Part shown: positions 8,950 to 59,944 of the stretch, piece after piece | How the letters are laid out: every line of letters begins with the position of its first letter | Numbering within the stretch: the stretch's first letter is position 1 | Assembly (NCBI GenBank): GCA_965644495.1 | Contig: CBFFSA010000012.1 | Span: forward strand, 1-64,000 | Source: Perkinsela sp. CCAP 1560/9 | Taxonomy: Eukaryota > Protista > Euglenozoa: Kinetoplastea | DNA: 64,000 nucleotides | Direction: 5' to 3' | Notes under the pieces: model-generated | Seen by the model: only the letters and a program-made list of their open reading frames with translations | Told to the model about the DNA's origin: nothing | Databases searched by the model: none | Program-made: the position numbers and the translations under genes

Positions 8950-9820
<871 letters not shown>

Positions 9821-10605: not shown

Positions 10606-13600
10606 ATGCTGCGCTCTTTGAAGCCCAATTTGTTTCGCATTTGTTTGCATCTGCGAACCGTTAAGCATCCTGACGACGTGTATGAGAAGCTTACACCACG
10701 AGAACACGTTTTAGCCAGACCTGATATGTACATCGGAAATACCTCATGTTCCAAAGAGTTATGCTGGGTTTACGACGAGACAGGTAATACAATGGAGCGA
10801 AAGGAGCTAAAGTATTCCCCAGGCTTGTACAAGATCTTTGACGAGATAATTGTTAACGCAGCAGACAACAAGACCCGTGAAGGCGCCAAACAAACATATG
10901 TAAAAGTTGAGATCGATCGACAAACAGGTGCAATAAGCGTAGAGAATGACGGCATTGGTATCCCAGTCGTGAAACATCGAAAATACAAATTATGGATTCC
11001 AGAAATGATTTTTGGCCACGTATTGACCTCTTCCAACTACGATGAATCAAAGAAAAGAATCACGGGTGGGAGATATGGATACGGCGCAAAGCTAACAAAT
11101 ATCTTTTCTAAGGAATTTTCTGTTGATACAAATTACGAACCGACGAAGCAGTTCTTCTCCATGAAGTGGCAAGATCACATGATGGTTGCTTCAGCTCCAG
11201 AGGTGCGAGAGGGAGGAGACTCAGGTTATACGAAAATTTCTTTTCTCCCTGATTACGCTAGATTCGGGATGGATAACCTAACGGATGACATGTACGAACT
11301 CATGTGTCGTCGTGTTGTGGATCTCGCTGGAGTTATTGGGTCCAATACAACCATATATCTCAACGCCACCCAGATCAAGGTACACAACTTTAAGGAGTAC
11401 TGCGCCCTCTACCCGGGAGCACGAACACATCCATCTGTGGCCCAGTCTTCATACCGTTGGGACGTTCTTGTGCGTACCAGTGACGAGGGCTACAACCAGA
11501 CGAGCTTTGTTAATTGCATCAACACTACTCGCGGGGGGACCCATGTGAACTACGTGACGGACGCCTTGAGTACTGCAGTGATATCTCACGTGCAGGAAAA
11601 GATGCCAAACGTTGTGGCAGCGAAAGACCTCGTGAGACAAAACATCTCCCTCTTTCTGAACTGCAAGATAGAAAACCCTCATTTCGATTCGCAAACAAAA
11701 ACCACATTACGCTCCCGAACACAAGAGTTTGGTTCGCTTCCGGTCCTCAAAACTCTCATTTCCAGGTTTCTGGCCGAGACAGATATCGTGGATCGCGTCC
11801 TTGTAGCAACTGAGAATCGTTACAGCAGAATTATGAAGAAGCACCAAACCACCGTTGTGTCAAGGACAAGCACGTTATTGATACCGAAGTTGGAGGACGC
11901 TGTTCACGCCGGGACGAAAAAGGCCAACCAATGTACTCTGATCATCACGGAGGGTGACAGCGCGAAGGCGTTTGCCGTAGCAGGCTTGAGCGTGTTAGGT
12001 CGCGACTACCACGGTATATATCCCATACGAGGAAAACCCATGAATGTCCGATCTGCATCCGTTTCAAGCGTTGCAGAGTGCACAGAGGTGCGCAATCTAT
12101 TAGCGATTCTGGGACTTTATCTGAAAACAACCAAAGGCCTCTCAAATCGACTGGTTGTGCAACAGAATTCCAACGGACTTCGGTATGGGAAGTTGCTAAT
12201 CATGGCAGATCAAGATCTAGATGGCGACCACATCAAAGGGCTCATTGCCAACTTGATCCAAGTCGTTGCCCCACAGTTGTTTCAACGCCCGGGATTTCTT
12301 GCGCAATTCGTCACTCCGCTGGTAAAGGCATTCGGGCCAAGGGGAGAAGTCCGCTCGTTTTATTCTATGGGGAGTTACACTAAATTTACCCAGGAGTTGG
12401 AAGAGATGAGCCCGAAGCCAAGATACCGATACAAATACTACAAGGGATTGGGAACAAATACATCGACCGAAGCTAGGGAGTACTTTAGGAAAATGGACGC
12501 ACACACGATTTCCTTCGTATACGACCCTGTCACCGACGAAAACGCCCTCGAGCTTCCGTTTGGCAAAGCGAACATAAAAGCCGCTGAGCGACGAACATGG
12601 ATCGAAGAAGGACTGAAAAATGTGACCCAAGACAACCAAATGGACTTCTCTGTTCGAAGCATGTCTTACCACCAGTTTGTCCACCGCCAAATGATTCACT
12701 ACTCCATCGAGGACTGTGCGCGATCGATCCCTCATCTCATGGATGGCCTAAAAATAACCCAACGCAAAATCCTCTTCGCCGCGCTCAAACGTAACCTCCG
12801 GGACCCCATCAAGGTCGTCCAGTTCTGCGGGTACATTGCCGAACACACCGCCTACCACCACGGGGACGTTAGCCTCCAATCCGCCGCGATCGCCATGGCC
12901 CAAAGCTTTATCGGTTCCAACAACGTCCCCCTTCTCCTCGGGGAGGGTCAATTCGGGACCCGTCTCGAGGGAGGGGTCGATGCCGCTGCCCCGCGCTACA
13001 TCCACATCCGACTCAGTGCCATCACCCATCTGCTGTTTCGTGCCGAGGACGAGCCCAATCTCACGCATGAGGTCGATGAGGCCCTCACCGTGCAGCCCCA
13101 GTTCTACGTCCCCGTGATCCCGACCCTCTTAGTGAACGGCTCCCACGGGATTGGCACCGGCTTCTCCACTTCGATTCCCGGGCACGACCCGCTGGTGCTG
13201 ATCGAGCTGATCCGGTCCTGGCTGAAATCCGGCAAGGAGATGACTGGGGACTTGAAGCCCTGGGTGACCGGATTCAAAGGGGAGGTCCACTGCCTTGGGA
13301 AGAGCGGCAGGTACTACACCACCGGGCGGGTCTCGCTGATTAATGGCTGCACGGTGCGGGTGACGGAGCTGCCGGCCTGGATGTGGACTTCGGATTATAA
13401 GGCGATTTTAAATGGCATGGTGGAGAAAGGAGTGATACGAAGCTACCAGGAGCACCACACGGTGGATGCAGTGGATTTTGAAATTGAGCTCGCCCCGCAG
13501 GTGATTTCGATGGGGATTCGGTTTAATGTGCTGTACCATTTGCTGTCGCTGGTGGGACGAAGCCGGAAGTCGCGGTTTATTGTGCAGGAGAAGACACGGG

Positions 13601-14193
13601 GGATTTTTCAGATGAGGAATGCGATGGAGGTGTTGAAAAATTTCTGTGAGATGCGGATGCACTTTTATGAGCTGCGGAAGAAGTCGGAGGTGCAGAAGGT
13701 GGAGAACCAGCTGAGTGTCGCGGAAGGAAGGCATGTGTTTCTGCGAAGCATCTTGGATGGAAAGATAAACATCTCAGGTAACGGTGCAGATATTGTAAAA
13801 GCACTTGTGGAGCTTAAGATCCCGAGAGATCCGGTGGACGGGTCCTACGAATATCTTTTGGGGATGAAAATGGCGTCGTTTTCTTCCGAAAGACGAGACG
13901 CTCTCGCTGAAAATGTGGCCATACTGCGGGAACGAGCTAATATGTTGAGACAGCGTTCCCCAAAGGACTTCTGGCTTTCCGACCTCGAGGAATTAGAAGT
14001 TGCGATGCGATCGCATATGGAGGAGTTTGCTGAGCGTACTAAGATTCCCGTCCGGCACCCGAAGCTTCGTCCCAACGGGACACGTGTTAGTTTGGACAAG
14101 CAAGAATTTCTGAACGTGAAGTCGCTTGCGAGGGCAAAACTTCGTGCGTTCGTTGCTTGGAACGGAAGATTGGGACGGCGTGTTGATCTTTGA
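10606..14193 (+). CDS. TOP2: Type IIA DNA topoisomerase, probably the mitochondrial (kinetoplast) paralogue
   Basis: EHVLARPDMYIG, GGRYGYGAKL, TEGDSA, PIRGK, DQDLDG, YYKGLGT and active-site AAPRY. Start MLRSLKPNLFR resembles a mitochondrial presequence; no long acidic CTD. Confidence 0.93.
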   Translation: MLRSLKPNLFRICLHLRTVKHPDDVYEKLTPREHVLARPDMYIGNTSCSKELCWVYDETGNTMERKELKYSPGLYKIFDEIIVNAADNKTREGAKQTYVKVEIDRQTGAISVENDGIGIPVVKHRKYKLWIPEMIFGHVLTSSNYDESKKRITGGRYGYGAKLTNIFSKEFSVDTNYEPTKQFFSMKWQDHMMVASAPEVREGGDSGYTKISFLPDYARFGMDNLTDDMYELMCRRVVDLAGVIGSNTTIYLNATQIKVHNFKEYCALYPGARTHPSVAQSSYRWDVLVRTSDEGYNQTSFVNCINTTRGGTHVNYVTDALSTAVISHVQEKMPNVVAAKDLVRQNISLFLNCKIENPHFDSQTKTTLRSRTQEFGSLPVLKTLISRFLAETDIVDRVLVATENRYSRIMKKHQTTVVSRTSTLLIPKLEDAVHAGTKKANQCTLIITEGDSAKAFAVAGLSVLGRDYHGIYPIRGKPMNVRSASVSSVAECTEVRNLLAILGLYLKTTKGLSNRLVVQQNSNGLRYGKLLIMADQDLDGDHIKGLIANLIQVVAPQLFQRPGFLAQFVTPLVKAFGPRGEVRSFYSMGSYTKFTQELEEMSPKPRYRYKYYKGLGTNTSTEAREYFRKMDAHTISFVYDPVTDENALELPFGKANIKAAERRTWIEEGLKNVTQDNQMDFSVRSMSYHQFVHRQMIHYSIEDCARSIPHLMDGLKITQRKILFAALKRNLRDPIKVVQFCGYIAEHTAYHHGDVSLQSAAIAMAQSFIGSNNVPLLLGEGQFGTRLEGGVDAAAPRYIHIRLSAITHLLFRAEDEPNLTHEVDEALTVQPQFYVPVIPTLLVNGSHGIGTGFSTSIPGHDPLVLIELIRSWLKSGKEMTGDLKPWVTGFKGEVHCLGKSGRYYTTGRVSLINGCTVRVTELPAWMWTSDYKAILNGMVEKGVIRSYQEHHTVDAVDFEIELAPQVISMGIRFNVLYHLLSLVGRSRKSRFIVQEKTRGIFQMRNAMEVLKNFCEMRMHFYELRKKSEVQKVENQLSVAEGRHVFLRSILDGKINISGNGADIVKALVELKIPRDPVDGSYEYLLGMKMASFSSERRDALAENVAILRERANMLRQRSPKDFWLSDLEELEVAMRSHMEEFAERTKIPVRHPKLRPNGTRVSLDKQEFLNVKSLARAKLRAFVAWNGRLGRRVDL

Positions 14194-16890: not shown

Positions 16891-17102
16891 TTCGAGAAAA
16901 ATACATAATGCTTGCTGTGGATACACCCCCGTTCAGAAAAGTGTTACAAAAGTTTTGAGAGCATGGAAGGAGTTTTTTAGCTGCTCCCCTGGCCAAAAAT
17001 AAAGGCAAATGGATTTTAATTGATATTTTCCGTTTTCCTTTTTTTGTCCTTTCATCATGTTTATCGGTCATAAGTAAGTTCCCTCCTTCACCATTTTCTT
17101 TC

Positions 17103-20100
17103 ATGACTTCACGCCCACCCCCTCCATCCCCCTCATCACCCACCCCCACCCACCCCCCTCCTCCCCTCACCCCGCCGTTCATCCCCACCCCCACCGTGAC
17201 CTCCAACCTCTCCCTCCTCCACAGTGCGCTGTGTGCCTCCCGGATCATCCTGCTCTACGGCCCCGCAGGTTGTGGCAAAACCCAATCTATTTTTTCGTTT
17301 CTCTCCTCTTCTTCACTTCCCCCCTCTCTTATGCCCTCTCAAATTCGATCCGCACTACTCGATGAGACCTCAGAGGCACGTGACTTAATCGGGGGGTACC
17401 AGTGCTCGGAGGTTCCGGGACAACTGCATTGGGCTCCCGGCCCCCTGCCTCATGCCATGAAAAACGGGGAGTGGCTTCTAATGGAAGACATTGACTTAGT
17501 GAGTTATGACATTTTAACCTTACTCGCGGGGATCGAGGACAACACGCAAGGGTACTACTTGTCCGACGTAGAGGAGTGGGTTCCGATTGCGGATTCGTTT
17601 CGTGTGATTGCGACCACAACACAAGATTGGCGCACACAGAGAGGGGGACGTGGGGTAAAAAAGGGTGTCAGCGAGGAGATGACAAACGCAGGCCAGGGCA
17701 ATCCAAATGTAGTCCCGGAAGTCTGGCACGGTCGACCTCGTGCACAGCTTCATGTGGTACCATGGTGTCCTGTGCGGTTTCAATCCATTCCGTGGGATGA
17801 GATGGAGACGATTGTACAGCAGCAGTTCAGTGCTCGCCTGGGAAATGCCCTGGTGCGTGATCTTTTGATAAAACCTGTACATTGCTTGGTGCATCAACTC
17901 CGAGCGTGTAACGTGATGTGTTCCCCGCTGCGTCAACTCTTAAAGGTGTGCGCTCGAGTGTACCACGCTGCAGAGCTTCCCTCCCTAACTCGTCAGGAGC
18001 GATATGTTCCCTCTCGTTGTCGCGAGTGTGTGTTTCGTCATCTAACGGATGTGTTTGTGGCTGCCATCCCGGCGATGAAGGATCGACTTTGTGTGAGTCG
18101 TTCGCTTTGTGAGATATTAGGGCTAGATGTGCGAAAAGCGGAGGACATCCTCCTACGAGAGGTACCGGAGGTGACCTACCACAGCGAAAACGGGAGCAAG
18201 AGGGTGCGAATCGGTTGTTGTTCGTTGCCAGTGGGACAGAAATCACTGTGTGCTCTATCAAGAGAGGTGCCGGACTACGCCCCGTGTCCTAGTTTGATAC
18301 GTCTGTTTGAGCGGCTGGCGTCATGTGTGCGAGCAGGGGAGGCAGTGCTACTCTCCGGGGAGAGTGGGGTAGGGAAGACCTATGCTGTACAACTTCTCTC
18401 CCAGCTATGTGGGCAGGATCGGTTCAATGTGTGTAATGTGAACCATCAAACAGAGACCTCTGACCTCCTAGGTGGGTGGAAACCCAAGAGTGCCTTCGAA
18501 ATGATGCAATCTTTGTATGAGGAGTTTGATAAATGTTTTACGCAGACATTCAATGCGGAACGCAACAGGAGTTATTTAGAGGCGACTCAGCGAACGTTTC
18601 AAAAGGCAGCAAATAACACCGACGACTACGGTTTGCGAAAGAAATTTTTCCACGTACTGCGTAAGGGCTGTCATATTGGATTAAAGCATAATCAAGTACT
18701 CTGGTCAAGCATCTCCAATAAAGTTTTCTCACTTGTGGAACAAATGGAAGCAGGAACGCCGCCGGCATTCTTTTCCTACCATGACGGTGCGCTTCAAGAA
18801 AATAAGAAGAACGGGGGATGGCTGCTTTTAGATGAGATAAATCTGGCGCCCACCGAGGTGTTGGATCGTATCGCTACTACCCTTGACGTAGACAATGACA
18901 ACACGCACCCCGAATTTCGTTTGTTCGCCTGCATGAATCCGCCAACCGACGCGGGAAAAAAGGCACTGCCCCAATCCCTACTCTCTCGGTTTACCGAAAT
19001 TTACGTTGATGAGCCGAAGGAAGCCGAAGAGCTCCTCATTCTTGTGAAACACTTTCTTCGCAATCTTCCGCAAGCACCATCTCCCGAAAAAATTGTATTG
19101 TTGTACCTTGAATTGTGCTCAAATACCCACAGCTTAAGTGACGTTGGTTTCGCTTTTGAAAAACCCTGCTACAATCTTAGGACATTGTGCCGTGCCTTGC
19201 GCTACGCAGCAGGACAGGCTGCTGTGTACGGAATACAGACGGCATTCATGGATGGCTTTCTCATGACGTTTGCTACTCAGGTGATCCCGCCGCGAGATCT
19301 CCAGGTTCGCCAAATGATTCAAAATGCACTCTTCCCTAACTTCAAGAACCAGAAAATGAATGTGAGACATCATCCTGAGAAAGTCCTGGTAGGAGGGTAT
19401 TTGCTCCCCAGGGGTCCTTTACCAGTAAACACACGAGACGATTTCGTTTGCACGGAAACAGTGATGCGTCATCTTGCCAGTTTGTCCAGATGTGTCATCG
19501 CGAACAAAGCAGTACTACTTCAAGGTCCTACAAGTACAGGAAAGACCACGTTAGTGCGGTACCTCTCTGAAGCCACGGGGCATTCATTCATTCGAATTAA
19601 TAATCACAATGCAACAGAGCTATCCGAGTATCTGGGGCAGTACTCCCAAACAGAGTCCGGCTCCTTGCGCTTTGTGGAAGGGCCTTTGATTTCTGCTGTG
19701 CGGACAGGAGCATGGCTCGTACTCGATGAGTTGAACCTTGCGAGCAGTGAGGTGTTGGAGGCTCTAAATCGACTTCTTGACGATAACCGTGAACTTGTTC
19801 ATCCGGAGAGAACTGAGGTACTGATACCACACGCCCACTTCCGGTTATTTGCTACACAAAACCCATGCGGCCAAATGGGATACTCAGGCCGAAAAGCCTT
19901 GTCGAGAGCATTTCGAAGTCGATTTTTAGAAATTCACGTGGGAGAAATGACGTCCTCCGATCTTGTACAAATGCTAACACAACCTCATTTTGCTCTGCCG
20001 GAAAATTTCGTACGGCGTATGATTGCCGTTATGGAGGACTTACAGCGAGCTCGCAGCGAATCCCATGTGCTTGCTGGCCGTTTCGGGTTCTTAACTCCTC

Positions 20101-30689: not shown

Positions 30690-30896
30690 ACCCGCTTACA
30701 GGGCAGTAAATCGTCAGAACGATGATTCTTGCTTGCTATTTTAACGCACGCGAAAACGAGATGTTTTTTACCCCTCATTTTTTAAGTTTTATATTTTCTT
30801 TGTACTTATGCTTTATCTGTGTACATCTTGTTCCTACCTTTCCTTTCCTATCACCCACGAACCCCCAAAACACGGTTTCCCTACCTTCCTAACCCC

Positions 30897-38721: not shown

Positions 38722-38749
38722 GAAGGGGGGGGGGTGTAGTGGATGTATA

Positions 38750-41629: not shown

Positions 41630-41967
41630 TCTAAAGGATAATGATATTTTTCTTCGTTTTCCGCGCCATCCTGTTCTATGATTTACTACGAGTCTTCCGC
41701 TCCAGTTGAATTCCTTACTGTGCCATCTAGCAGCCCGGTGATGGGATACCCAAGTCAGATAAAAAACAATTCTAAAGCTGTTGAAAGCTACAAAAACCAA
41801 ATTAACGTCGTAGTATATTGTATGTCGTATGTTACTCCCTCAATTCGACTGATTTCGTTCGCTATAATTAATGTTTTCTTCAGGAATTATATTTATGAGA
41901 TCGCACGTAGTAGTACAAAGGAATAGGATAGCGGATTGTGTAGAACTTCATTCAATCGTAATAGAAA

Positions 41968-42768
41968 ATGTCGGATGATCAACTGACTCACGTTGAAAAA
42001 CGTAGCTCTGCTCGAGGAAAGATTCGTGGTGCCTGTTTCCCTCCAGAAGTCGAACTTGCACTATTTACAAAATATCTTAAAAATACGGATTCCACGTGGA
42101 ATACTCATGTTCCCGCCTGTAAGTGGCCTGGAATTCGTTGCACCGATCCTACTATACCTGATGCTGTTACAGACCTTGACTGGGGGTTCGGTGACCTTCA
42201 AGGAATTCCACAATGGAGCCACATACCCTCGTCTGTACGCCGAATAAATGTGTTTCTTAATGGACTAACGGGAGAGGTGCCACTCAGCCTTCTACCTCGT
42301 GGACTTGACGAATTGGATTTGGCAGGCAACAGATTTAGTGGTACACTAGATCTAGAGAATATGCCACCTGATGTGAGTGATGCAAGTTTTGGTTCAAACT
42401 TGTTTGATGGTACACTCGATCTTAGTACGTTACCCGCGAATATTTTAGAATTTCACGCATATAAAAATTTCTTTGTGGGGTCTCTAAATCTTACTACATT
42501 ACCACAATCACTGGAACATCTGGATCTCAGCGCTAACCTATTTTCAGGTGGTATCGATTTGAGTCGTCTTCCCCGTGATTTCTTAGTTCTTAATCTGGCA
42601 TCAAATCGTCTGGAGAAGGTAACAGGATTAGATTTACTGCCTTCCACCTTGGAAGAGCTGAACCTTGCGAAGAACCTTGAGCTTTGTGGAGAGTACAATA
42701 AAGCCTCGTTACCTGTGTCTCTTGATTTTGAAATCCTAGAGACAAACCTAGTTGGTGTAGGGGCATAG
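41968..42768 (+). CDS. Small LRR protein (family copy 3)
   Basis: KIRGACFPPEVEL cap, PACKWPGIRC and 23-aa LRRs. Confidence 0.9.
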   Translation: MSDDQLTHVEKRSSARGKIRGACFPPEVELALFTKYLKNTDSTWNTHVPACKWPGIRCTDPTIPDAVTDLDWGFGDLQGIPQWSHIPSSVRRINVFLNGLTGEVPLSLLPRGLDELDLAGNRFSGTLDLENMPPDVSDASFGSNLFDGTLDLSTLPANILEFHAYKNFFVGSLNLTTLPQSLEHLDLSANLFSGGIDLSRLPRDFLVLNLASNRLEKVTGLDLLPSTLEELNLAKNLELCGEYNKASLPVSLDFEILETNLVGVGA

Positions 42769-43027
42769 TTTTGGTATATAAGTACAAACGAGGGAAATCA
42801 ATTTTTGAATACAAAATTATTTGGGCCAGCATGCAGTCTTTGTGATACTCTTCTTATTTTCTTCAGAGATATATTTATAAAATTTTAGAGGCGAGAGGCT
42901 GTGGATGTGATCATTATGAATCACAGGGGGAGTACTACTGGTATCGTAAGTTATTTTATTAATCGCATTTTTATATATTTTCGTATCCACAACTTGATTC
43001 ACATTAAAAACATCTGTAGGAACCGAC

Positions 43028-46000
43028 ATGTCTGCCACAAACGATGACCTTCCTAGGCCGCTTGAACCGCCGACAGACGTAGTTTTCAGTATGGCAGACA
43101 ATTCTTCTGAGCAAACAGCTATTGAAAATCCAGAAATAGATTCCGTATTTGAGCCCTTTGATTCCACATGGATGGCAGATGCAACCCCTCTCCCAGTGGG
43201 TACTATGGGAACCTCGTACAATACAGTGCATTATACAGCTACGGCAGCAGAGCATACGTCCACCGGGACTTTTCTCCACTCCGCAACCGGAACACTGCTC
43301 CACCCGGGGATGGAACCCACTGTTGGTGGTTTTACTCGCCTTCCTCACGAACAGACATCAACAGCGGCCGGCACTCCCACACCATTTGTTTCCCAGTTTC
43401 CAGAAAGTGAGGAATCTCGACTTAAACCACATGCCAGAGCGTGGGGTCTGGAAGATCTAAGCCCAGATGAAAAGCGCAACATACAGGTCATACTAGAGAA
43501 AAATGCTCCTTTGTATGAAACGGATATCGCTCAGATGATACCTACGGGATACGAAAAAGTGGATGCGCCTTTGTCCTACGCCCCGAAAAGCACCCCTTCA
43601 GAAGCGAAATCGAATTTGCAGTATTGGCAAAGTTTGTTTCGAAGCAAAAATCAAAAAACTTTGTCGAAAGACACGTCACTTGTGCTTGCGAGTAGCGTGT
43701 CAACTCAGGAAATGGGTGAAATTTATGATGTAACATCTCAATTCGGTCCTGATCTTCCGAACTTGCAAGAGTCCGATTATCCTATCTTTGGGTTTCTTTC
43801 ACGTTACAAAGACTTTAGTGATCAAGATTTGTGTCGCGACCGTAATCTTCGCGAAGCCCTTGTTATGCGACTTCTATTTCGTATAAAAAAGGGGGATCCT
43901 ACTATACGTCGGGGTGCGCAGAGTGCTCTCATGCAACGGCTCACCACAGTTTCAGTAGCTCTAGTGATTGATTGTTTTCTCCAGGTCCTTTTACGAGGCG
44001 TTTTTGAGGAAATGATCGAGAGGCATTACATTATCAAGGCGCTGAATCGCGTAATATACCACTTAGGGGCCCAAGAAACTCCGAGCTTAGGTCAACAGCG
44101 CCAAAAAGGGGCCGTTGAATTGAAACCTTTCGTACATCGCTTACTCACTTTGATCTATCCAATGCTAATAGCGGGGAACGCCTTGATTCGAACGGAAGGA
44201 AAAGATCTCATGATGAACCTTTCCCGGACCCTTGGGGTAGGAATCATGATAACAGCAATGCGGCCCGATTTAGAAATGCCAGCATCGACACAGCCTACAC
44301 AAATAACTGAGGACAGCGAAAGAAATGATACTGCTGACTCATCCGACTCAGAAAGCATTTGTGTCAACCCTAATAACGGTTTTACTCAACAGGAATTGAA
44401 CGAGCATCAAAGGATGGTCGCTGAAGCGTTCTCTATCCTTGTAGAAGCCCGCGGAATTGCGCCGATAATTCCCTTTCTATGCACTGTATGTGCAACAGGC
44501 ACATCCCGGAGTCGAACCGTTGAAGCTGTTCCCGTATCTGAGCATCCTGTGTTTCGCATTCTCTCGGGAGTTAAGATTATTCAACGTATTGCATACAGGT
44601 TACGAAGCCAAGCTTTACTTCCTCATCTGGGGAATCTCATTCAGATAGTAGCTCCACTTTTACACACGGAAGGGAGTCGTGCTTCCATTCGACTTAAACA
44701 AGCAGCTGCTATGGCTGTAACAGGCTTAGCGGAATCTGTATTTCCCCACGGCATTGAGCACTTTGAAGACGTCATTCAACCGTTGTGGGAGATTGTTGCT
44801 CAAGGCGCCTCTCGTGCAAAACCTGAGGGCACAAGCGAGGAAAGCAGTGCAACTCCCAGTCTTTACATGCTTAGTGCGGCACTTAAAGCCCTTGGCAGTC
44901 TCGTTCCGTTAATGGCCCCTGAAAACGCAGAGCAATGTACACAATTCTTGTCTTCTGTGTGGGTCCAAGAGGATATGAACACGGTTTCTTCGTTGTCCTT
45001 GTACCATACACATGAAGATATGAGACTGGCAATCTTTTACGTCATTCGTCAGTGTCAGCACAACGAGGGGGTAACAAAAAACTTTGTGCTCGATCACTGG
45101 TTAAAACCTTTCCTAAAACATTTCTGGAACCGTAAAGCAGTGATGTCTGCATGTGCCGCATCCGCTGAAAGGAAGGCTTCACTTGGCCCTGATGCTCATC
45201 GTTCCCCAGCGATTAATACAGCAAGCATAATAAACGCGTCTCCGTATGCTCGCCACTTATGTGATACAACTGTGGCCTTAGGAATTAAAACAGATCCACG
45301 TCATATTATCACGCGGCTAACCTCCCAACTTTACGATGAGGATCCACAATATCGATTGCTGATCCTTGAGGTGTTCGAGTCACTTATACAACGGATGATC
45401 GAGAATCAAACCCAAAACGAGCGAAGAGTGGCCGAGGATACTATTCTTCGGTTAGAAACGTCTGCCGAATCCTCGCTCTTAGAAGCTGTGTTGTATGTTT
45501 TCGGAACTTTCGGGATGTCTCCATGGAAATCGAGCGAGGATACATCAAGAATAGCCACACAAGACGAGGGTATCGTGTGCCAAACCATTCTTACATTGGT
45601 TTATGCCTTGGGTCCACGCTCCACCATACATATGGATGCCATTGTTAAAGTCGTACGTCACAGAATGGCAAGCGGGGCTCTTGTAGAAAATTCGAGTACT
45701 GACACAGAGGAATGGATGCGTCCTCTGTTGCCCGAGGGAACTCAACAAAAAACCGAACACCGGAGCCGTGCATACAGTGCGAATCTATTAGCTGCGCTCG
45801 CCCCCTATGTTCTTCGTGTGCCACGCGCCACGCATGGATACGTCACAGGCCCAAGCCTGGGCACGGAGACCCTGGACATGCTTCGCTCCCTGTTGCGCAC
45901 CGAAGAGGACCCCGGCATGATTGCCGCTCTGCTCCACTGCATTCACGAATTCCTGTGCTCGTTTCTCACCCTGATACCGAAAGGCACCCCTTCACCCCCT

Positions 46001-47053
46001 CCCCCCTCCACACCCTCCTCCGGTATTCTCCCCAGCGAACCCGACAACCTCCTCTCCGAGGACACCGCCCTTGACCTCATCCGCCAACTCAAAGCCATCC
46101 TCACCAACCGCGACGAGGAGGTCCAGCAAACCGCCGCCGCCCTCCTCGGTCTCCTCGCCTCCCACCTCGCCACCCCGCACCTCCCCGACCCCGTGGAGCC
46201 CCTCACCTGGGTCCAACTCAGCTTCCGTCTCCTCGACCTCCTGAAAGCCCCCAGCAAGGCGGTCCGCCGGGCCGCGACCGCCGCCTTCGGGGCCGTCGCC
46301 CAGGCCGCGGACCCCATCCACGTCCTCAACACCCTCCTCGACCCCCTCCCCACCCCCGAGCGCACCCTGCGGCTCAGCACGACGATCGCGCTCGCGGTGG
46401 TCGCGGAGCGCTGCCAGCCCTACCTGGTGCTCCCGTTCCTGATGAACGAGTACCGCACCCCGGACCCCCTCACCCAGCACGGGGTGCTCAAGGCGCTCGG
46501 GTTCCTCTGGGAGTACCTCGGGGCGCGCGCCACGGGGTACGCCCCGGCGCTGGTCCCGCTGCTGTGCCACGCCCTCGGGGCCGCGGACCGCACCTCCCGG
46601 CAGCTCGCCTGTGGGGTGGTGAAGCACCTGGCGCTGGCCCTGCGCGGGGGCGGGATGGAGGGGGAGCTGGTGCAGCTGCTGAACTATGTGTGGCCGCACT
46701 TCGTGGCGGAGGCCGCGGGGACCGCGACCAGTGGTGCCATGGTGTATGTCGGGGGGAGTAGCACGGGGCCGTCCGCGCATGGGTTGAATGCGGTGGTGGA
46801 GGCGATACGGGCGCTGGGGGTGGGGTTGGGCCCCGCGGTGGTGTGGCAGTACGTCGCCCCGGGGTTGTTTCACCCCGCGAGGAAGGTGCGGAACCTGTAC
46901 TGGCGCGTGTATAACCAGATGCAGATCTTGTTTGGTCACACGTTACCTCCGTTTTATCCACGTTGGGGTGAAATTGTTCGTCGGAGGGATACGCCGGTGG
47001 GGTTGAAATCGAAGAATTCATTTGAAATACCTGAACTTATGGTGTTTTTGTGA
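43028..47053 (+). CDS. SF3B1: Splicing factor 3B subunit 1 (U2 snRNP HEAT protein), divergent
   Basis: LLFRIKKG, ERHYIIK, LPFLMNEYRTP, GVLKALGFLWEYLG, GLFHPARKVRNLYWRVYN and PFYPR. Confidence 0.93.
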   Translation: MSATNDDLPRPLEPPTDVVFSMADNSSEQTAIENPEIDSVFEPFDSTWMADATPLPVGTMGTSYNTVHYTATAAEHTSTGTFLHSATGTLLHPGMEPTVGGFTRLPHEQTSTAAGTPTPFVSQFPESEESRLKPHARAWGLEDLSPDEKRNIQVILEKNAPLYETDIAQMIPTGYEKVDAPLSYAPKSTPSEAKSNLQYWQSLFRSKNQKTLSKDTSLVLASSVSTQEMGEIYDVTSQFGPDLPNLQESDYPIFGFLSRYKDFSDQDLCRDRNLREALVMRLLFRIKKGDPTIRRGAQSALMQRLTTVSVALVIDCFLQVLLRGVFEEMIERHYIIKALNRVIYHLGAQETPSLGQQRQKGAVELKPFVHRLLTLIYPMLIAGNALIRTEGKDLMMNLSRTLGVGIMITAMRPDLEMPASTQPTQITEDSERNDTADSSDSESICVNPNNGFTQQELNEHQRMVAEAFSILVEARGIAPIIPFLCTVCATGTSRSRTVEAVPVSEHPVFRILSGVKIIQRIAYRLRSQALLPHLGNLIQIVAPLLHTEGSRASIRLKQAAAMAVTGLAESVFPHGIEHFEDVIQPLWEIVAQGASRAKPEGTSEESSATPSLYMLSAALKALGSLVPLMAPENAEQCTQFLSSVWVQEDMNTVSSLSLYHTHEDMRLAIFYVIRQCQHNEGVTKNFVLDHWLKPFLKHFWNRKAVMSACAASAERKASLGPDAHRSPAINTASIINASPYARHLCDTTVALGIKTDPRHIITRLTSQLYDEDPQYRLLILEVFESLIQRMIENQTQNERRVAEDTILRLETSAESSLLEAVLYVFGTFGMSPWKSSEDTSRIATQDEGIVCQTILTLVYALGPRSTIHMDAIVKVVRHRMASGALVENSSTDTEEWMRPLLPEGTQQKTEHRSRAYSANLLAALAPYVLRVPRATHGYVTGPSLGTETLDMLRSLLRTEEDPGMIAALLHCIHEFLCSFLTLIPKGTPSPPPPSTPSSGILPSEPDNLLSEDTALDLIRQLKAILTNRDEEVQQTAAALLGLLASHLATPHLPDPVEPLTWVQLSFRLLDLLKAPSKAVRRAATAAFGAVAQAADPIHVLNTLLDPLPTPERTLRLSTTIALAVVAERCQPYLVLPFLMNEYRTPDPLTQHGVLKALGFLWEYLGARATGYAPALVPLLCHALGAADRTSRQLACGVVKHLALALRGGGMEGELVQLLNYVWPHFVAEAAGTATSGAMVYVGGSSTGPSAHGLNAVVEAIRALGVGLGPAVVWQYVAPGLFHPARKVRNLYWRVYNQMQILFGHTLPPFYPRWGEIVRRRDTPVGLKSKNSFEIPELMVFL

Positions 47054-47362
47054 ACGTAGGGTGAGTATTGAGCAAGGGGAGTTTCAGAGTTCTGTAAGAA
47101 TGGTGGGCATCACAGCGAGAAGGTGGCAACTGTTTAGTTCGGATTAAAAACGGGGCACTATTTTTTGGTGATTAATGGTGTGCTCCTATTACATGGTTCG
47201 ATTCATATTGTTCATCACAGTAATAATATTTTGAGCATGAAAGGCAAGGAATAGTCATATTTTCAAACATTTTCCAATGTTTTGTTTTCAATTATTCTAT
47301 TGTTCGGTTATAAGATGACTTCCCCGAGGTATTATTCGCCAGACACCGCGAGTGGTATGTAA

Positions 47363-48511
47363 ATGCCGCTCTCTCGGACGTGTGGCTTAATTGGCCTACC
47401 GAATGTAGGCAAGAGTACCGTTTTCAACGCGCTACTCACTTCGAAAATGGCACAAACTGGAAATTATCCATTCTGCACTATAAAGCCAAATATTGCTCGA
47501 CTTGCTGTGGCAGATACCAGGCTTTGTAAATTGCAAAAGTTCTCAAAGGCAGCGAAGATAATCCCGGTGGAAATTGGACTTACAGATATAGCCGGACTCG
47601 TTGCCGGAGCGCATCGTGGTGAGGGACTGGGCAATCAGTTTCTTGCGGATATTCGAAATGTAAGTGTGTTGCTCCATGTATTGCGCTGCTTTATAGGCGA
47701 TGGATTTTTGGATCCTACTCCCCTTTCGGATGCTCATGTTATACTGCAAGAATTGATACTCAGCGACCTGGCATTAGTGGAAAAACGATACGCTAGATTG
47801 ACTAAAGCTGGGAGTAAGAAGGGTGATGACGAACTTTCTTTTATAAAGTATCTTAAAGTGTGGCTAGAGGAAGGCAAGCCCGCAAAAACAGTCCTGTGTG
47901 ATTTTGACTCATCGCTACACAAAGTCGCCGCCCAAATTTTACGCGAGCTTCAGCTTTTATCGAGTAAACCCATGATATGGGTTCTAAATTTGGGGGAAGA
48001 CAAGTTTGAGCAGGAACAAATCCACTATCGGGAGCAAATTATCGCGGACAAAACTCTTTTTTCTTTGCCACCAAATTCCAACGAAAATGGAACTAATGAT
48101 TACGCACCAATTGTTAGTTTGAGTGCGAGATTGGAGGAAGAAATGTCCGACCTCTCACTTGACGATCGCGTGAGTTTTCGTGGTGAATATGGGCTTACGA
48201 ACGAATCTTGTGCTGCAGCCGTAACAAAAGTTGTACATGAGAGCTTAGGATTGGGAACCTTTTTTACGGTTGGACCAGAGATGGTTCACGCATGGTCCTT
48301 TCACCGTGGAGCAAACGTACGAGACGCAAGTGGAGAGATTCACTCTCACTTCAAGGAACACTTTGTTGCGGCACACACACTACACTGGGAGCAGTACATG
48401 ACTTATGGGTCACTGAATAAGGCAGACGATGCACTTCTTCGTCGTGACGCGGAATATATTCTAAAGGATGGCGAAGTGATGCATGTTTCTCATAAGGCAC
48501 CAAAAAAGTAA
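47363..48511 (+). CDS. ychF: YchF/OLA1 Obg-family ATPase
   Basis: GLPNVGKST, NYPFCTI, DIAGLV.GA..GEGLGNQFL, TFFTVGP and GEIHS. Confidence 0.92.
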   Translation: MPLSRTCGLIGLPNVGKSTVFNALLTSKMAQTGNYPFCTIKPNIARLAVADTRLCKLQKFSKAAKIIPVEIGLTDIAGLVAGAHRGEGLGNQFLADIRNVSVLLHVLRCFIGDGFLDPTPLSDAHVILQELILSDLALVEKRYARLTKAGSKKGDDELSFIKYLKVWLEEGKPAKTVLCDFDSSLHKVAAQILRELQLLSSKPMIWVLNLGEDKFEQEQIHYREQIIADKTLFSLPPNSNENGTNDYAPIVSLSARLEEEMSDLSLDDRVSFRGEYGLTNESCAAAVTKVVHESLGLGTFFTVGPEMVHAWSFHRGANVRDASGEIHSHFKEHFVAAHTLHWEQYMTYGSLNKADDALLRRDAEYILKDGEVMHVSHKAPKK

Positions 48512-48729
48512 GTCAAAAAGGCACGTCAGAATATTTATATGTATGACACTATGGTTTCTTATGGTTTACGCATACTGCAAAGTGGGGAAACACATACTAG
48601 TGATTCTGGGTCATTTTGTTCTTTTGTTATTTTTTGTCCCAATGCACCGTGTGCAATGATGATCGCCAAATAATGCGCTAGATACGCATACGCACATACA
48701 AATATCCCCCACAGAGGTGCCCCTTACTC

Positions 48730-50184
48730 ATGATGCGACGTGCGCCTCGTTGGTACACGAAGAATTCGAAGGGATGGGATCGTTTTCACCGATGGTGGCC
48801 ATGGGGTTTGGGACTGGGCGTCGCTGCGTTGTATCAACATAACCCCACGCCTATGGATGACATTGGATCTGCCATCTACGCCTCCTTTCGTTACCCTTTA
48901 CTTCGTTTTACTGAGCGACTGGAAAAGTTTGACAACGACCCTGAGGTGCGCTCTTTGGAACTACCACCAGAGCAAGTGTTTGGACCTCTCCCCCTGAAGC
49001 AACAACTTTTTATTACGCTCCAAGCGTTGGAGGAGGAAAATGAGCTTGCAGATCATTACCTGACTCGGCTTGTGATTGACCATATCGACTTAGGGTTGGA
49101 ACCCTCCCCCCTAGGCTCGGCCTTTCTGGACGCGGGTGGGGATGCCCTCTGCCGTGAAGCCGTGCGACGGTTTCGCGACTTATCGCACCAGCGGATTAAA
49201 TTCTTCACCGCGGACCGGTTTATCCGTTTTCTCTCCATTGCTCTTCCCCACGCCCCGATCGCCCGTGAGTACCTCAAAGAAAAAGACGCCATTGATCTAC
49301 TCTTTCGGGCCCTTCACGACCGTGTGGATCCCTACATCCCCCATCTCGCCACGAGACTGCTCGTCCTCCTCGCGTTACACCAACCCACAGACGGAGAGGT
49401 GGAGCGACGGGTGCTGCAAAACCCCCAAGCGGTCCCCGCCCTCGTCGATTACCTCAACATATGCTCCGGGGATCCCCAGGACACGCGCTACGTGTTTATG
49501 CTCCTTAGCGCGTTGGCCCGGTCCCACCCCACGCTGGCATCCGCCCCGTTTCGTACCCACCATGTCCTCGAGGCTGTGTTCCACAACATGAACCTGGCCA
49601 TGCATAAAGGGTTGTCCCAACACCTCCGGATACTGGGGGATATGGAGCAACTCGACCCCCGGGGGGTGGAGGCTCACATGGCGCAGAGTAACGACCCCCT
49701 CACGGTGTTGCTCGGTGTCACCAACACATTTAAAAGCTATGCTGAGATCCAGACCCCGTTGTGTCGGTGGCTGAGACGAGGCGTGGAGGCACGTTCCCCG
49801 GGGGAGTTTATGGCCTATGGAGGGCTGCCGATTCTGGCACGGGTTTTGGCTCTCTACCCCTATCGCAGTAAGGGGGAGGGAGAGAGTGAGAAGGTGGAGG
49901 AGGACGGGAGAAAGGGTGCGGAAGCGAGTAGAAGTGAGAGAGAATGTGTCAATCTTGATAAGTCCCAAAATGATGTAAAAGATGAACGTTCCGGGGGTGC
50001 GTCGTCGCCCCCGAACGAATACTCAGAGCTTCATACATGTTGGTACGACATTGCCCGTCGTGTCCTCGCCGATCCGGAATGCCAGAAACATTTTACATAC
50101 AATCGTGAGACGGAGGCGGCGGTGGCAGAGGCAAGATCCTTTGTCCAATGGATGGAAGGAGAACCCACAAAAAAGAGTAGCTGA
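48730..50184 (+). CDS. Hypothetical helical-repeat-like protein with N-terminal basic/TM segment, possibly mitochondrial
   Basis: 484 aa ORF co-oriented with the array; MMRRAPRW...WWPWGLGLGVAALY. Confidence 0.7.
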   Translation: MMRRAPRWYTKNSKGWDRFHRWWPWGLGLGVAALYQHNPTPMDDIGSAIYASFRYPLLRFTERLEKFDNDPEVRSLELPPEQVFGPLPLKQQLFITLQALEEENELADHYLTRLVIDHIDLGLEPSPLGSAFLDAGGDALCREAVRRFRDLSHQRIKFFTADRFIRFLSIALPHAPIAREYLKEKDAIDLLFRALHDRVDPYIPHLATRLLVLLALHQPTDGEVERRVLQNPQAVPALVDYLNICSGDPQDTRYVFMLLSALARSHPTLASAPFRTHHVLEAVFHNMNLAMHKGLSQHLRILGDMEQLDPRGVEAHMAQSNDPLTVLLGVTNTFKSYAEIQTPLCRWLRRGVEARSPGEFMAYGGLPILARVLALYPYRSKGEGESEKVEEDGRKGAEASRSERECVNLDKSQNDVKDERSGGASSPPNEYSELHTCWYDIARRVLADPECQKHFTYNRETEAAVAEARSFVQWMEGEPTKKSS

Positions 50185-50573
50185 TCTTGCTTTTACACGG
50201 TAGTTGCTTGTGCACGGTGTCAAAATTAGCGGTGTAACTGTAACATTTTCTACTAAAACATAAACTCGTATGTGCCGTAAAGCAGATCAATATACTGTGT
50301 CGGACATGTAAGAAAGTCGTACATGTAAGAGGCTCCCCAGCAGGGGTATTTTTTATCCGTTTTTGCTCATTTTTCTTACTTCTGTACGACAGAGATTTCT
50401 TGACCAAATTTGTATATCACATATTAAGCACATGAAATGAACATTCAGCATTTCATGATACAAGAAGTATTCCTTCTTCCTTCTGTATGTTTGTAAAACG
50501 CAATAATTTTCCCAAAAATAACTGATCATTCTAAAGTTTTCCACTATCTTCCTTTTTTGCCCACCCCATCACC

Positions 50574-51197
50574 ATGCTCTTCCGCTACACCCGTCGTTTC
50601 CTCCAATCCGTCTCCCAAACCGCCGGGATGGGGGTCACAGCCGCCACCGCCACAAAACCCCCCACCCCCTCCCACCCCCCACCCTCCGAGCCCTCCCCCA
50701 CGGGCCCACTCCCCCAATCCCCTCCCCCCACGGGGAGCAGCGGCGCGACGCCCCCCTCCCCGCACAGCCCCCCTCCCCCCTCCCCGCTGTACAAGTCGGT
50801 GAACCACGTCACCCTAGTCGGGGTCGCCCACGACATCCAGAGCGGGTTCGTCTACGAGGACCCGGTGTGTCAGTTCACCCTCTCCACCAGCTCCCTGGAC
50901 ACCATGATCCACGGCCGCACCGGGGAGGCGGTCCTGGAGAAGGACCACCACACCATCCGGTGCTTCGGGGAGCCGTTCTGCACCCAGGTACGGCAGATGC
51001 TACGGGAGGGGTACGTGGTGGTCGCGAGTGGGCGGCTGCGGCTGAACCCGCAGCTGGACCCCGCGACGAGTAAGCATCACTACTTCCCGTATATCCATGT
51101 CAGCCCCCCGCACGGGAATGTCCATGTGATACATGGCGACCCGAAGAAGGGGGTGGAGGGTATGCCGGATGTACAGGCGGCCTCGAATGAGAGTTAG
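50574..51197 (+). CDS. KREPA6: RNA editing core complex OB-fold protein MP18
   Basis: [48 protein letters not shown] and YFPYI match trypanosomatid KREPA6 as I recall it; [10 protein letters not shown] presequence. Confidence 0.93.
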
Positions 51198-51535
51198 GGG
51201 GGAAAGGGGGTGAAACGTTCTCGCACTTATGTGCGGGGGGGTAGCGTGAGGGGGGGTAGGGAAGTTTGGGGGGGATTGAGGGTACTATTGCATGTATGTG
51301 GTTAAATTAAGATACCTTGTCAAAAAGGGAGCGTTTAAGGGGACCGAACCTGGATATTACAATACGCCCTTCTATACGGGGCTGTACGGGACTTTTCCGG
51401 TTATTGTTTGCGTGGTTTTATGTCAGAAACTCCAGTGTGTTCAAAAACTAGGAAATATAGAAATATGTATGTTGGAGAGAACGTGACGATGAGAATCATT
51501 TAATTGTTTTTGTTTTAAAAATTTCCGAAAAATCA

Positions 51536-52450
51536 ATGTTGTCTGCTGGACATGATCTTCAGTTTAGTGTACTGAGCTCGGAAGCCATACCACCAAACCA
51601 AAAACGTCGTAAAGTGGAAGGTGGATCACATGCGCTACCATCTACACGAGTGTTTGGATCCAAAGTCCGTGGTGCCATTCTTGCTCCGGAGATAGAATTG
51701 TCTCTCTTTATAGAGAATCTTAGTTTCGGAAAGAAAGTTCACGACCCGACTCAAATCAACATGATTCCGCAAGGCCGGATTTCCTCATGGGGTAGAGAAA
51801 CTCCGGCGTGTGAGTGGAGTGCGGTCATCTGTCGCAATGATACTGTCACGGAACTCCGATGGAATGGCTTGCGCTTGGGAGGGAGTCCTTCGTGGGGCCA
51901 CCTTCCTCTTGGTCTAGAGGTTCTTCAGCTGGGGGCTGACAACACCCATTTTTCGCAACATACCAATCAGTTAGAAGGACCAGTGATAATAGAGTCGCTT
52001 CCGTCCACATTAAGATCAATTGATCTTTCGTCAAATTTATTGTCAGGCATATTCTCACTATCTGGTCTCCCACGCAGAATTGAATTCTTAGATATATCGA
52101 ATAACTGCTTTGAGGGAAAGTTGGAGCTTCAGTCCCTGCCGTTCATGATACAAGTATGTGATCTATCGAAAAATCACTTTGAAGGGGAAATCAAACTGGA
52201 CAACCTTACGCAGTCTCTACATTGGTTGTCACTTGAAAACAACTCATTGTCTGGTTTCCTCAATATTTCAAGTTTGTCACCTTATCTGAAAATCCTGCTC
52301 CTCTCAGATAATTACTTCAATGGAACCGTATCGTTCGTTGACTTGCCCGCTTCCGTACAATTTTTGGATCTACGACGAACGGACGTCTCAATGTGCGGGA
52401 ATGAAACTGTTCCCCGTTGTGTTCGAATAGGATGGAGGGCGACTCGTTAG
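51536..52450 (+). CDS. Small LRR protein (family copy 4), NLS-like PNQKRRKV
   Basis: KVRGAILAPEIEL cap, ETPACEWSAVIC and LRRs. Confidence 0.9.
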   Translation: MLSAGHDLQFSVLSSEAIPPNQKRRKVEGGSHALPSTRVFGSKVRGAILAPEIELSLFIENLSFGKKVHDPTQINMIPQGRISSWGRETPACEWSAVICRNDTVTELRWNGLRLGGSPSWGHLPLGLEVLQLGADNTHFSQHTNQLEGPVIIESLPSTLRSIDLSSNLLSGIFSLSGLPRRIEFLDISNNCFEGKLELQSLPFMIQVCDLSKNHFEGEIKLDNLTQSLHWLSLENNSLSGFLNISSLSPYLKILLLSDNYFNGTVSFVDLPASVQFLDLRRTDVSMCGNETVPRCVRIGWRATR

Positions 52451-53246: not shown

Positions 53247-53328
53247 TAGTTGTGTTTTTACTCATATAGTTGTGTTTTTTTACTCATATAGTTGTGTTTT
53301 TTTACTCATATAGTTGTGTTTTTTTACT
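53247..53328 (+). repeat. Four tandem TAGTTGTG(T)5-7ACTCATA units
   Basis: Direct repeat immediately upstream of ORF 53365; may overlap its trans-splicing pyrimidine tract. Confidence 0.85.
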
Positions 53329-53364
53329 ATGATACACTCGTGCTTTTAAATTATTGCTACCCCC

Positions 53365-54387
53365 ATGCAGAAAGCGAAACCTACACTACAAACCTTGCGA
53401 GAACGCTCCCCCGAAGCCGAGCTCCGTGAAACAGAGACAGAACCCTCCACGGAAAAACAACTCCTCGTGGAGTCTTCTTCACAGGAGATCCGCCTGCACT
53501 GGCCCAGCGCTCTACCCCGACCCGGGCCCTTTGTGGACTTTGGGGACACCCCTAGCAGTGCGTTTCCCACCCCTGCGACGTTCTCGGACCCTTTGCCGAG
53601 TTCCTCCGTCGCCCCCTCACATGGACACTCACTGCCGGGTCCCACCCCCTCGGGTACTAAGAGCAACACCCACCCGACCCTATCCCCGGTACTCTCGGGT
53701 GTACAACCCAAGAGGGCAACCCAGCCGGGGCGTACCCCCGAGGGAGAGGACTGGCCCGATGCCATGGACTCCCCTATTGTGGGCTACGGTCGGGTAAAAG
53801 GGCTCCCACGAGAGGGAATGCCCCCAAGTGTGTCACCCGAGACCACAGAAGTCCACAACCCCTCGGGAGCCCCACAACGTGGCGCCGAGCACACTGGGGG
53901 AACGGTGCTCGAGACAAACGTCCAAGGGCGTAGTGGAAATAAAAAAGAGAGTGAAAAAGTGGATACGGGGGATAAGGCTGGACGGTTCCCCCCTCCCCCA
54001 CCCCCACCGGTGTCACGGCTTCTGATCACCGGGGTGCCGCTGTGCTCTCGTGAGTGGCATGATAAAGTGTGGTCGAGGTGGTATCACTGGGTGGTCGCCT
54101 GGTGGGAGAGAAACAAAAGCTATCCCCCACCCCCTCTGTGGGAAGAGAAAACGGCCAAGGAGGATGCAGCTGAGAAATCAGAGACGAAAGCAGAGTCTGT
54201 GGAAGAGACTCAGGACGTACACGGGGGAAATCCGTACTCTCTTGAGCAGTGGCGTAAATACTGTGCATTCTGGTGGAATTACATGAACCAAGCCTATTTC
54301 TGGAGTCAGGCTGCCGCAGTACCTGCGCCGAATGTGGAGTTATCCGCGGCTTGGGTTTCACAGCTCTACGACCCTTCGGAGCACTAG
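53365..54387 (+). CDS. Hypothetical low-complexity protein with two Trp-rich helices
   Basis: 340 aa ORF with WSRWYHWVVAWW and QWRKYCAFWWNY. Confidence 0.65.
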   Translation: MQKAKPTLQTLRERSPEAELRETETEPSTEKQLLVESSSQEIRLHWPSALPRPGPFVDFGDTPSSAFPTPATFSDPLPSSSVAPSHGHSLPGPTPSGTKSNTHPTLSPVLSGVQPKRATQPGRTPEGEDWPDAMDSPIVGYGRVKGLPREGMPPSVSPETTEVHNPSGAPQRGAEHTGGTVLETNVQGRSGNKKESEKVDTGDKAGRFPPPPPPPVSRLLITGVPLCSREWHDKVWSRWYHWVVAWWERNKSYPPPPLWEEKTAKEDAAEKSETKAESVEETQDVHGGNPYSLEQWRKYCAFWWNYMNQAYFWSQAAAVPAPNVELSAAWVSQLYDPSEH

Positions 54388-58531: not shown

Positions 58532-59944
58532 ATGTTGATTGATCCCGCTGAATGGACAGACAAGCGCACGGTCACAAAATGCGAACGAGCAGGGTGTGGT
58601 CGTCGTTTCTTCGGGGTTCGCCGAAAAAATCACTGTCGTCAGTGTGGTCACGTATTCTGCACGCCCTGCACCGTCCGAATGCCGGACTCCGAGAAGAATC
58701 TCATTAAAGTTTGTCTGTCGTGTGGTAAGCGCGCCCGCCAGGAGTCCACGTTTCGTGAATCTGCGTTGGACCCCGCAAAGGATTCTGATATGGCCACTGG
58801 GGAGAAACCTCCAACACTCCCGGAACTTCGACCTTCCACGCCAGTGATGCGAAGGCGTAAGATTTGTGTTCTTGGCCTCCGTGGGGTGGGAAAGAGTGCT
58901 TTGCTGGCCTCTTTTGTGCAAGGCGGGTTCCGTGGCACCTACAACCCCACTACCAGTCAAGGCTCCGTCCTCGCCCACCGCACTGTGAACCAGATTCCCT
59001 ATGAGCTCGTTCTGCTGGACACCCCGGGGATGGAGGAGGCTACCACATGGACCTTCCCTCCCATCCTTAGCATTGGCACCCACGGGTACGTCCTTCTCTA
59101 CGCCGTAAGCCACCCCGCCTCCTTCCACGCCGTACGCAGCCTCCACGAAAAAGTCATCGAATGCGCCGCCCCGGAGACGCCCATCCTGCTCGTCGGCACC
59201 TGCTGCGGCGAGGAAACCACCCCCCTACCCCCAACGCACCTCACCCACACTCACCCCGCACCCGAACAAACCCCCGGCCCCCACGCCCCCCTCTCCCCCT
59301 CCCCCCCTCCCCAACCCCTCCCCACCACCACCCCACGTCGTGTACCCCCCTCCCCCACCCCTCCTCCCCACGGGGCATCCCCCTCCCACCCTCCCCCGCT
59401 CCCCCTCCCCCCCACCGCTACCCCCACCCGTCCCTCCCCCTCCCCTCCCCGTGGCTCCTCCTCCATCTCCACTCCCCGTCCCCAGGCCTCTGCTGCAACA
59501 ACAACAGCAGTAGCCGCAGTGACAGGGGACAGCCCCACCCCGGGGAGTAGCAGTACTACGGCTACTACCACCACAGAGCCTCCCCCGACGCTCCTCTCCA
59601 CCCCTCCCCCCGGGAGTGCTCCTCTGTTCCACCCGTTGCACGCGACGGGGGGCGTGGAGGAGGACCCCGCGGGGGGAGGGGGGATGGTAGAGGGGGGGAT
59701 GGAAGAGGAGGAGGTGGAGCCGATTGCGGCACGGAGGAAACGGGCGGTGAGTGTGGAGGAGGGGGAGCGGCTCGCGGAGGCCCTGGGGTGTCCGTTTATG
59801 GAGTGTAGTGCACGGACGGGGCTCCATGTGGAGCAGGTGTTTTTGTCCGTGGTGGAGAGGATACAGGGGTTGGAGAATAAGAGAAGGCCAAGGGAGGGGT
59901 GGGGGAGGGTTGAAAATTTGTTGTGTAGGAGTTTTGTAAAATGA
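58532..59944 (+). CDS. RHEB: FYVE-Rheb GTPase with a large low-complexity insertion
   Basis: FYVE RRKNHCRQCGHVFC; Rheb-type P-loop GLRGVGKS, YNPT, DTPG, HGYVLLY and ECSAR. Confidence 0.85.
   Translation: MLIDPAEWTDKRTVTKCERAGCGRRFFGVRRKNHCRQCGHVFCTPCTVRMPDSEKNLIKVCLSCGKRARQESTFRESALDPAKDSDMATGEKPPTLPELRPSTPVMRRRKICVLGLRGVGKSALLASFVQGGFRGTYNPTTSQGSVLAHRTVNQIPYELVLLDTPGMEEATTWTFPPILSIGTHGYVLLYAVSHPASFHAVRSLHEKVIECAAPETPILLVGTCCGEETTPLPPTHLTHTHPAPEQTPGPHAPLSPSPPPQPLPTTTPRRVPPSPTPPPHGASPSHPPPLPLPPTATPTRPSPSPPRGSSSISTPRPQASAATTTAVAAVTGDSPTPGSSSTTATTTTEPPPTLLSTPPPGSAPLFHPLHATGGVEEDPAGGGGMVEGGMEEEEVEPIAARRKRAVSVEEGERLAEALGCPFMECSARTGLHVEQVFLSVVERIQGLENKRRPREGWGRVENLLCRSFVK

Follow-up and report, generated by a model that had tools for sequence, protein, structure and literature searches.

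Strand-polar C-to-G composition islands in prokinetoplastid genes, possibly the imprint of long-lived recombination hotspots

We analyzed positions 1-64000 of contig C12 (the window, 64,000 nucleotides) from a 21-Mb assembly of 110 contigs, and the GC-rich islands in it whose strand composition switches abruptly from C-rich to G-rich. The window genes are intronless and all lie on one strand; they include genes for a type II topoisomerase (TOP2), a midasin-like protein, UBA1, SF3B1, an OB-fold protein and a FYVE-Ras protein. The best match of UBA1 is PhF-6 (53%), with 46% identity to Perkinsela, placing the source organism among the prokinetoplastids. It is a diploid prokinetoplastid related to the amoeba symbiont Perkinsela, and its heterozygosity is visible in a single sequencing run (X1) that contains both alleles. 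An extended scan added C12:64001-264000, for 264 kb in total, and open reading frames (ORFs) make up 44% of the sequence scanned. The other haplotype was taken from four stretches of a separate public assembly, and contigs from four sequencing runs were compared across 45700-51600. For all haplotype comparisons, the runs carry two unphased haplotypes and come from one study.

A preliminary description of the window, made by eye, had proposed 11 switch points, and all of them are present: at fourfold-degenerate (4D) sites, C exceeds G to the left and G exceeds C to the right. The skew persists at these third codon positions at all 11 switches, with Fisher p values from 6e-22 to 0.04, which are optimistic because each split was the chosen maximum. 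Switches at 33.1, 36.4, 49.6 and 53.9 kb are weak. With a two-armed statistic, in which a call requires both a C arm and a G arm, the window gave 9 C-to-G and 2 G-to-C calls, against 1.4 and 1.2 under a block-shuffle null. The fixed C-then-G polarity that had been described holds across C12:1-264000 as well (22 calls versus 3 reverse); the reverse calls are the low-GC gaps that separate neighboring islands, and with arms set to 600 nt the same statistic gave 17 versus 0. Islands recur in the second assembly and in the contigs of the four runs, so we rejected an assembly artifact. They occur once per 11-12 kb, as patches of 1-1.5 kb in about one gene in four, and 21 of 22 centers lie inside ORFs. 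Their host genes (TOP2, midasin, UBA1, SF3B1, the OB-fold and FYVE-Ras proteins, a CCT subunit, aminopeptidase P) share no common function. Searches of an open-access library found no published account of such islands.

The islands of the window are as follows, with no strand assigned and with refined, approximate switch points given as centers. The TOP2 gene (10606-14193) holds an island at 12757-13745 (center ~13190) with both edges free within the gene. At the start of the 4528-amino-acid (aa) midasin-like gene, an island at 17080-18400 has a C arm running from the ATG (17080-17266), a weak G arm and a center at ~17360. Strong islands fill the ORFs at 30897-31715 (island 30832-31741, center ~31416, with 20 haplotype differences in 30.5-31.5 kb) and 37402-38721 (island 37415-38742, center ~38493, with haplotype differences at 38046-38595). 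Between them are weak islands near the start of UBA1 (gene 32625-35669, island 32700-33420, center ~33078) and in a leucine-rich repeat (LRR) gene (36142-36750, center ~36400). The 3' end of SF3B1 (43028-47053) carries a strong island at 45794-47050 (center ~46609) with two 20-aa insertions, and haplotype divergence rises at ~46.56 kb. The intergenic flank adjoining its G arm (47054-47362) is not G-rich, and the haplotypes there are ~6% different. A moderate island occupies 49230-49940 (center ~49627) in the ORF at 48730-50184. The OB-fold (Pfam SSB) gene at 50574-51197 is filled by a strong island at 50559-51282 (center ~50921) whose G arm continues ~85 nt beyond the stop codon. A weak island spans the ORF at 53365-54387 (center ~53878), and a strong one in the FYVE-Ras gene (58532-59944) covers 58935-59909 (center ~59634), with a low-complexity inverted repeat on its axis. 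Adjoining the G arm that ends at 38742, a MITE-like element at 38746-39520 consists of 140-nt inverted repeats (91%) around ~500 nt. Short trinucleotide runs coding for Ser, Thr or Ala recur beside centers (38410-38440, 59480-59570, and C12 ~145.85 and 251.47 kb).

Composition at 4D sites is the same, mirrored, on the two sides. Read on the C-rich strand, the left arm has A 0.074, C 0.656, G 0.107 and T 0.164, and the right arm A 0.068, C 0.674, G 0.148 and T 0.109; the background is without skew (A 0.27, C 0.22, G 0.22, T 0.29). GC at 4D sites is 0.76-0.89 in islands versus 0.44 in the background, and the central 150-250 nt are a mixture of C and G with 89% GC. Arms had been described as C(+A)-rich and then G(+T)-rich; the C and G part of that description stands, and the A and T part is reversed, as the C-rich strand has more T than A (0.16/0.07 and 0.11/0.07 at 4D sites). 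The pull to C is of equal size in three separate site classes, with log-odds of 1.89 and 1.98 at 4D sites and, for T-to-C at two-fold sites of the C strand, 1.87 and 1.83. Sites on that strand that can hold only A or G are unbiased (A-to-G +0.23 and -0.31). Thus, the islands reflect a one-strand gain of C rather than an overall shift from AT to GC: on that strand T, A and G alike are drawn to C, with log-odds of ~1.9, or about sevenfold odds. The preliminary description also took the islands to be fixed, dyad-symmetric sites acting at the DNA level, which agrees with the mirror-equal 4D composition, the decay from the center in long genes and the lack of skew in the background.

In long genes, the arms are steady for ~600 nt and have faded into the background by 750-900 nt. 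Arms that reach a start or stop codon end sooner: the described spill into untranslated regions is present but short, with background composition 80-120 nt beyond the coding sequence. Centers are never <228 nt from a coding end. Stacked switch points have no central motif, and the islands show no strong neighbor-base context (CpG, TpC). CpG is not enriched (observed/expected 0.76 in islands versus 0.97). Insertions of telomerase-like or interstitial telomeric sequence were rejected, as TTAGGG-type hexamers occur once versus 6 expected. Runs capable of forming G-quadruplexes (G4) do lie on opposite strands as described, with 13 canonical motifs on the top strand, all right of a center, and 43 on the bottom strand, all left. 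The encoded proteins contain 20% Pro in C arms versus 5%, and 14% Gly in G arms versus 5%. We looked for override of conserved residues and did not find it in CCT (1 column among the 46 conserved at 90%, and none of 42 inside the island) or in TOP2, UBA1 and SF3B1, where it is no higher inside than outside beyond the homologues' own pattern. Perfect inverted repeats occur at 3 of 24 centers, above the 99th percentile of cross-pairs, and their midpoints lie 6-25 nt away from the switch; two of the three exceed all 552 cross-pairs. At C12 ~145.8 kb (L009:1790-1928), a 61-nt inverted duplication, 80% complementary and perfect over 22 nt, lies on the island axis within an insertion in the aminopeptidase P gene. 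At C12 ~207.7 kb (L015:3582-3791), a perfect 21-nt inverted repeat is symmetric about the island center in a 161-aa ORF.

Haplotype differences cluster around some of the islands. Between 22.6 and 46.5 kb, 28 of 41 differences lie ≤900 nt from two centers, in 15% of the length. At the SF3B1 center at 46.6 kb, divergence jumps: 3 events in 7.9 kb give way to 74 in 10.5 kb. Flanks of strong islands are 4-6% different between haplotypes and island coding DNA 0.4%; in the diverged block, island coding DNA differs at 0.42% versus 0.49% for other coding DNA. For CCT, the difference peaks fall in both intergenic flanks. Pooled over coding DNA, differences reach 0.60% ≤300 nt from strong centers versus 0.10-0.14% at >1.5 kb, a post hoc comparison on few islands. 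A strand-coordinated burst of mutation on one haplotype was rejected (7 versus 2 at 31 kb and 3 versus 3 at 38 kb, not significant). Blocks with ~0.6% heterozygosity are separated by long, nearly homozygous ones (31500-46500; C12 134-153 kb), which suggests inbreeding or loss of heterozygosity. The highest coding density of differences seen, 12 in 915 nt, is in an LRR gene lacking an island (51536-52450). A 22-nt tandem repeat at 53247-53348 differs in copy number between haplotypes; the window also holds a 439-nt tandem duplication at 3279-4117, which belongs to a dispersed repeat family, and a trinucleotide array of 47 copies at 9141-9282. The other assembly has a second TOP2 copy (L024:10001-13642; 96% DNA identity) among transposons, not found in the main assembly, which has kept the island and lost the catalytic Arg-Tyr in a cluster of changes.

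Several processes could impose such a pattern. One of the two readings offered in the preliminary description, replication from fixed origins whose leading strand is G-rich, would account for a minus-to-plus jump in GC skew like that at human and bacterial origins (PMC2817419), and one island per 11-12 kb is not impossible as a spacing. That proposal fared poorly and is quite unlikely, because the origins of Trypanosoma brucei, the only kinetoplastid with a stranded origin map, are intergenic and have the reverse polarity (PMC13179062), replication skew is long-range rather than confined to 0.7 kb and pairs G with T where the islands pair G with A at 4D sites, and the rise in GC is left unexplained. 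A related model centered on the spacer, with G and C on either side of it, was rejected, since skew is nearly absent from the genes next to island ends. Also unlikely is an extreme form of the fungal skew tied to transcription or gene architecture, in which RNA processing sites or polymerase state would set the pattern. The symmetry had been taken to exclude transcription, an argument that fails: C-then-G is its own reverse complement, so genes of both orientations show C followed by G along their coding strand. A gene-directional process therefore cannot be excluded by polarity, and a polarity test on minus-strand genes is uninformative. Coding-strand polarity is indeed that of fungi (PMC3315797), island edges coincide with coding ends, and a slope of the same kind is found in 30 of 40 non-island genes (p=0.0015) and in 11 of 12 genes of the relative L025 (p=0.0006). 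However, long genes hold both arms side by side far from one end (the SF3B1 C arm begins 2.8 kb in), and 12 kb of the midasin gene carry no arm. Fungal skew peaks in the 5' flank with A and T flat, whereas here the flank is spared and 4D GC nearly doubles, and a one-way process is not expected to give exact mirror symmetry.

An alternative that is also unlikely, though less so, keeps the fixed centers and replaces conversion with mutation, such that outward repair or restart synthesis puts G opposite anything, through wobble, 8-oxo-dGTP, or an exposed template containing oxidized G or hydroxymethyl-U. It fits polarity, symmetry and arm length equally well, JBP1/JBP2-like genes and three Y-family polymerase genes are present, and diversity is higher near some islands. 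Such synthesis would have to boost transitions and transversions equally, and would leave the cliff at coding ends unexplained; a REV1 or C-deamination signature on resected strands would probably have the opposite polarity. Nor is island coding DNA more variable in the diverged block (see above), and the three strong islands at 141.8, 145.8 and 147.9 kb contain no SNPs and thus are not hypermutable. Selection for mRNA fold-back, G4 structures or Pro/Gly-rich protein is very improbable. The arms do pair strongly by composition and the effect is limited to the transcribed exon, but in 10 of 13 islands cross-pairs fold at least as well as the native arm pairs, canonical G4 motifs occur on both sides in only 10 of 24, the host genes are functionally unrelated, and the effect is strongest at silent sites.

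The best fit, to which we give a probability of roughly 0.45, is that the islands are long-lived intragenic recombination (double-strand-break) hotspots with strand-aware repair favoring C. A break or gene-conversion hotspot was the other reading of the preliminary description, and it stands as the best fit, inferred from sequence symmetry, site classes and haplotype patterns. The pull to C falls, with two-fold symmetry, on whichever strand has its 3' end toward the center. Resection from 5' to 3' leaves 3' overhangs that become the recipient strands in heteroduplex, top on the left and bottom on the right (PMC11922761, PMC6715734), and these are the C-rich strands of the islands. In the work of Li et al. 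(2019), conversion bias was confined to isolated mismatches, and a pathway restoring the recipient strand at single mismatches was proposed, perhaps acting at G or C, not both (PMC6715734). A C-only form of this pathway would account for the observed polarity, the neutrality of A/G sites and the loss in diverse flanks. Within a mismatch, a recipient-strand C would be restored or left unrepaired, and A, G or T would be replaced by the base of the donor. Repeated through many generations, such repair would act as a fixation bias (log-odds ~1.9) toward C on the left, G on the right and high GC, shifting silent and weakly constrained codons while being too weak for conserved residues. Since the bias would require isolated mismatches, it would die in heterozygous, indel-rich intergenic flanks, which differ every 20 nt, giving the cliff at coding ends. 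Low-rate breaks in all gene bodies, with tracts halting at spacers, could give the weak C-to-G slope of ordinary genes, and an extended 3' end folding back onto the complementary arm could produce the occasional inverted duplications on the axis. In yeast, C:C mismatches are poorly repaired, which would act like C-only restoration. The genome carries genes for SPO11, MND1, HAP2, five MutS, two MutL and two UDG family proteins.

Several points weigh against recombination hotspots of this kind. Haplotype differences predicted in advance at the islands at 141.8, 145.8 and 147.9 kb are absent, the region being homozygous (0 SNPs in 18.5 kb), and the heterozygosity signal elsewhere was recognized post hoc in few islands and two haplotypes. 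No factor fixing the centers was found: they have no motif and only a weak preference (p=0.023) for positions 230-800 nt from a coding end. A C-only bias would leave more A on the C strand than is observed. Hotspots of yeast and plants lie mainly at promoters rather than in coding sequence, and the asymmetry so far described for human hotspots is mutational (C>N). Li et al. (2019) raised the single-base variant as no more than a possibility. More tentative still is the fuller picture, a protist with ~2,000 stable intragenic hotspots in which heteroduplex repair would restore C alone on the broken strand.

As to the molecular rule of GC-biased gene conversion (gBGC), Li et al. (2019) did not decide between G, C or both as the base restored on the recipient strand. 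Short-lived hotspots average the repair rule out, and stable hotspots would write it into the sequence; the island pattern matches the prediction of a C-only rule. If the hotspot reading is true, the center, tract length and strand of each hotspot can be read from sequence alone, and this genome is direct evidence that gBGC can follow a rule of one base on one strand. By whatever mechanism, about a quarter of the genes have been rewritten by a force that is not adaptive. The islands will mislead gene callers, codon-usage analyses and phylogenies of early-branching kinetoplastids, and the gene calls of the second assembly break within islands.

Among relatives, a Perkinsela sequence (L023) and L021 have neither islands nor slope in 23 kb each. 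L025, with intronless, GC-rich genes, has a gene-wide 5'-C/3'-G slope and no discrete islands. The CCT orthologue in L028 (L028:54-1670; 47% identical), which comes from an unrelated run, has a weaker C-to-G switch at the same gene position (p=0.01).

Known systems resemble the islands in part. In T. brucei, origins mapped by short nascent strand sequencing (SNS-seq) have a dyad-symmetric composition and G4 on opposite strands beside the center; however, they are 85-92% intergenic and A/T-dominated, with A/G and plus-strand G4 on the upstream side and T/C and minus-strand G4 on the downstream side (PMC13179062), so that both polarity and G4 strand order are the reverse of the islands. Human origins and CpG islands (PMC2817419) likewise show GC skew passing from minus to plus across a GC-rich island, but human origin skew is long-range with T>A on the G-rich strand, whereas the islands have A>T there, return to background by ~750-900 nt and are not CpG-enriched. 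Genes of unicellular fungi have opposite GC skews at their 5' and 3' ends (McLean and Tirosh 2011, PMC3315797), with a coding strand that is C-rich then G-rich and effects on 4D sites and amino-acid use, as in the islands. Fungal skew is mild, gene-wide and strongest in the 5' flank, with A and T flat, while the islands are local and abrupt, with ~sevenfold odds, raised GC, spared flanks and A falling from 0.27 to 0.07. Hotspots of gBGC (Li et al. 2019, PMC6715734; runaway GC regions of gerbils, PMC7403616) are alike in the hotspot-size local rise in GC, the rewriting of silent or weakly constrained codons and the loss of bias at dense mismatches. Of the classical features of gBGC, we found the 4D GC rise, meiotic and mismatch-repair genes and a heterozygous diploid, but not strand-symmetric weak-to-strong bias (A-to-G equal to T-to-C). 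Known gBGC is treated as a strand-symmetric AT-to-GC process, whereas the islands gain C on one strand, G-to-C included, with neutral A/G sites and mirrored skew within coding DNA. Membership in gBGC hotspots, kinetoplastid origins or fungal skew thus fails in each case on a defining feature, and we infer that the islands work like a strand-polar variant of biased conversion.

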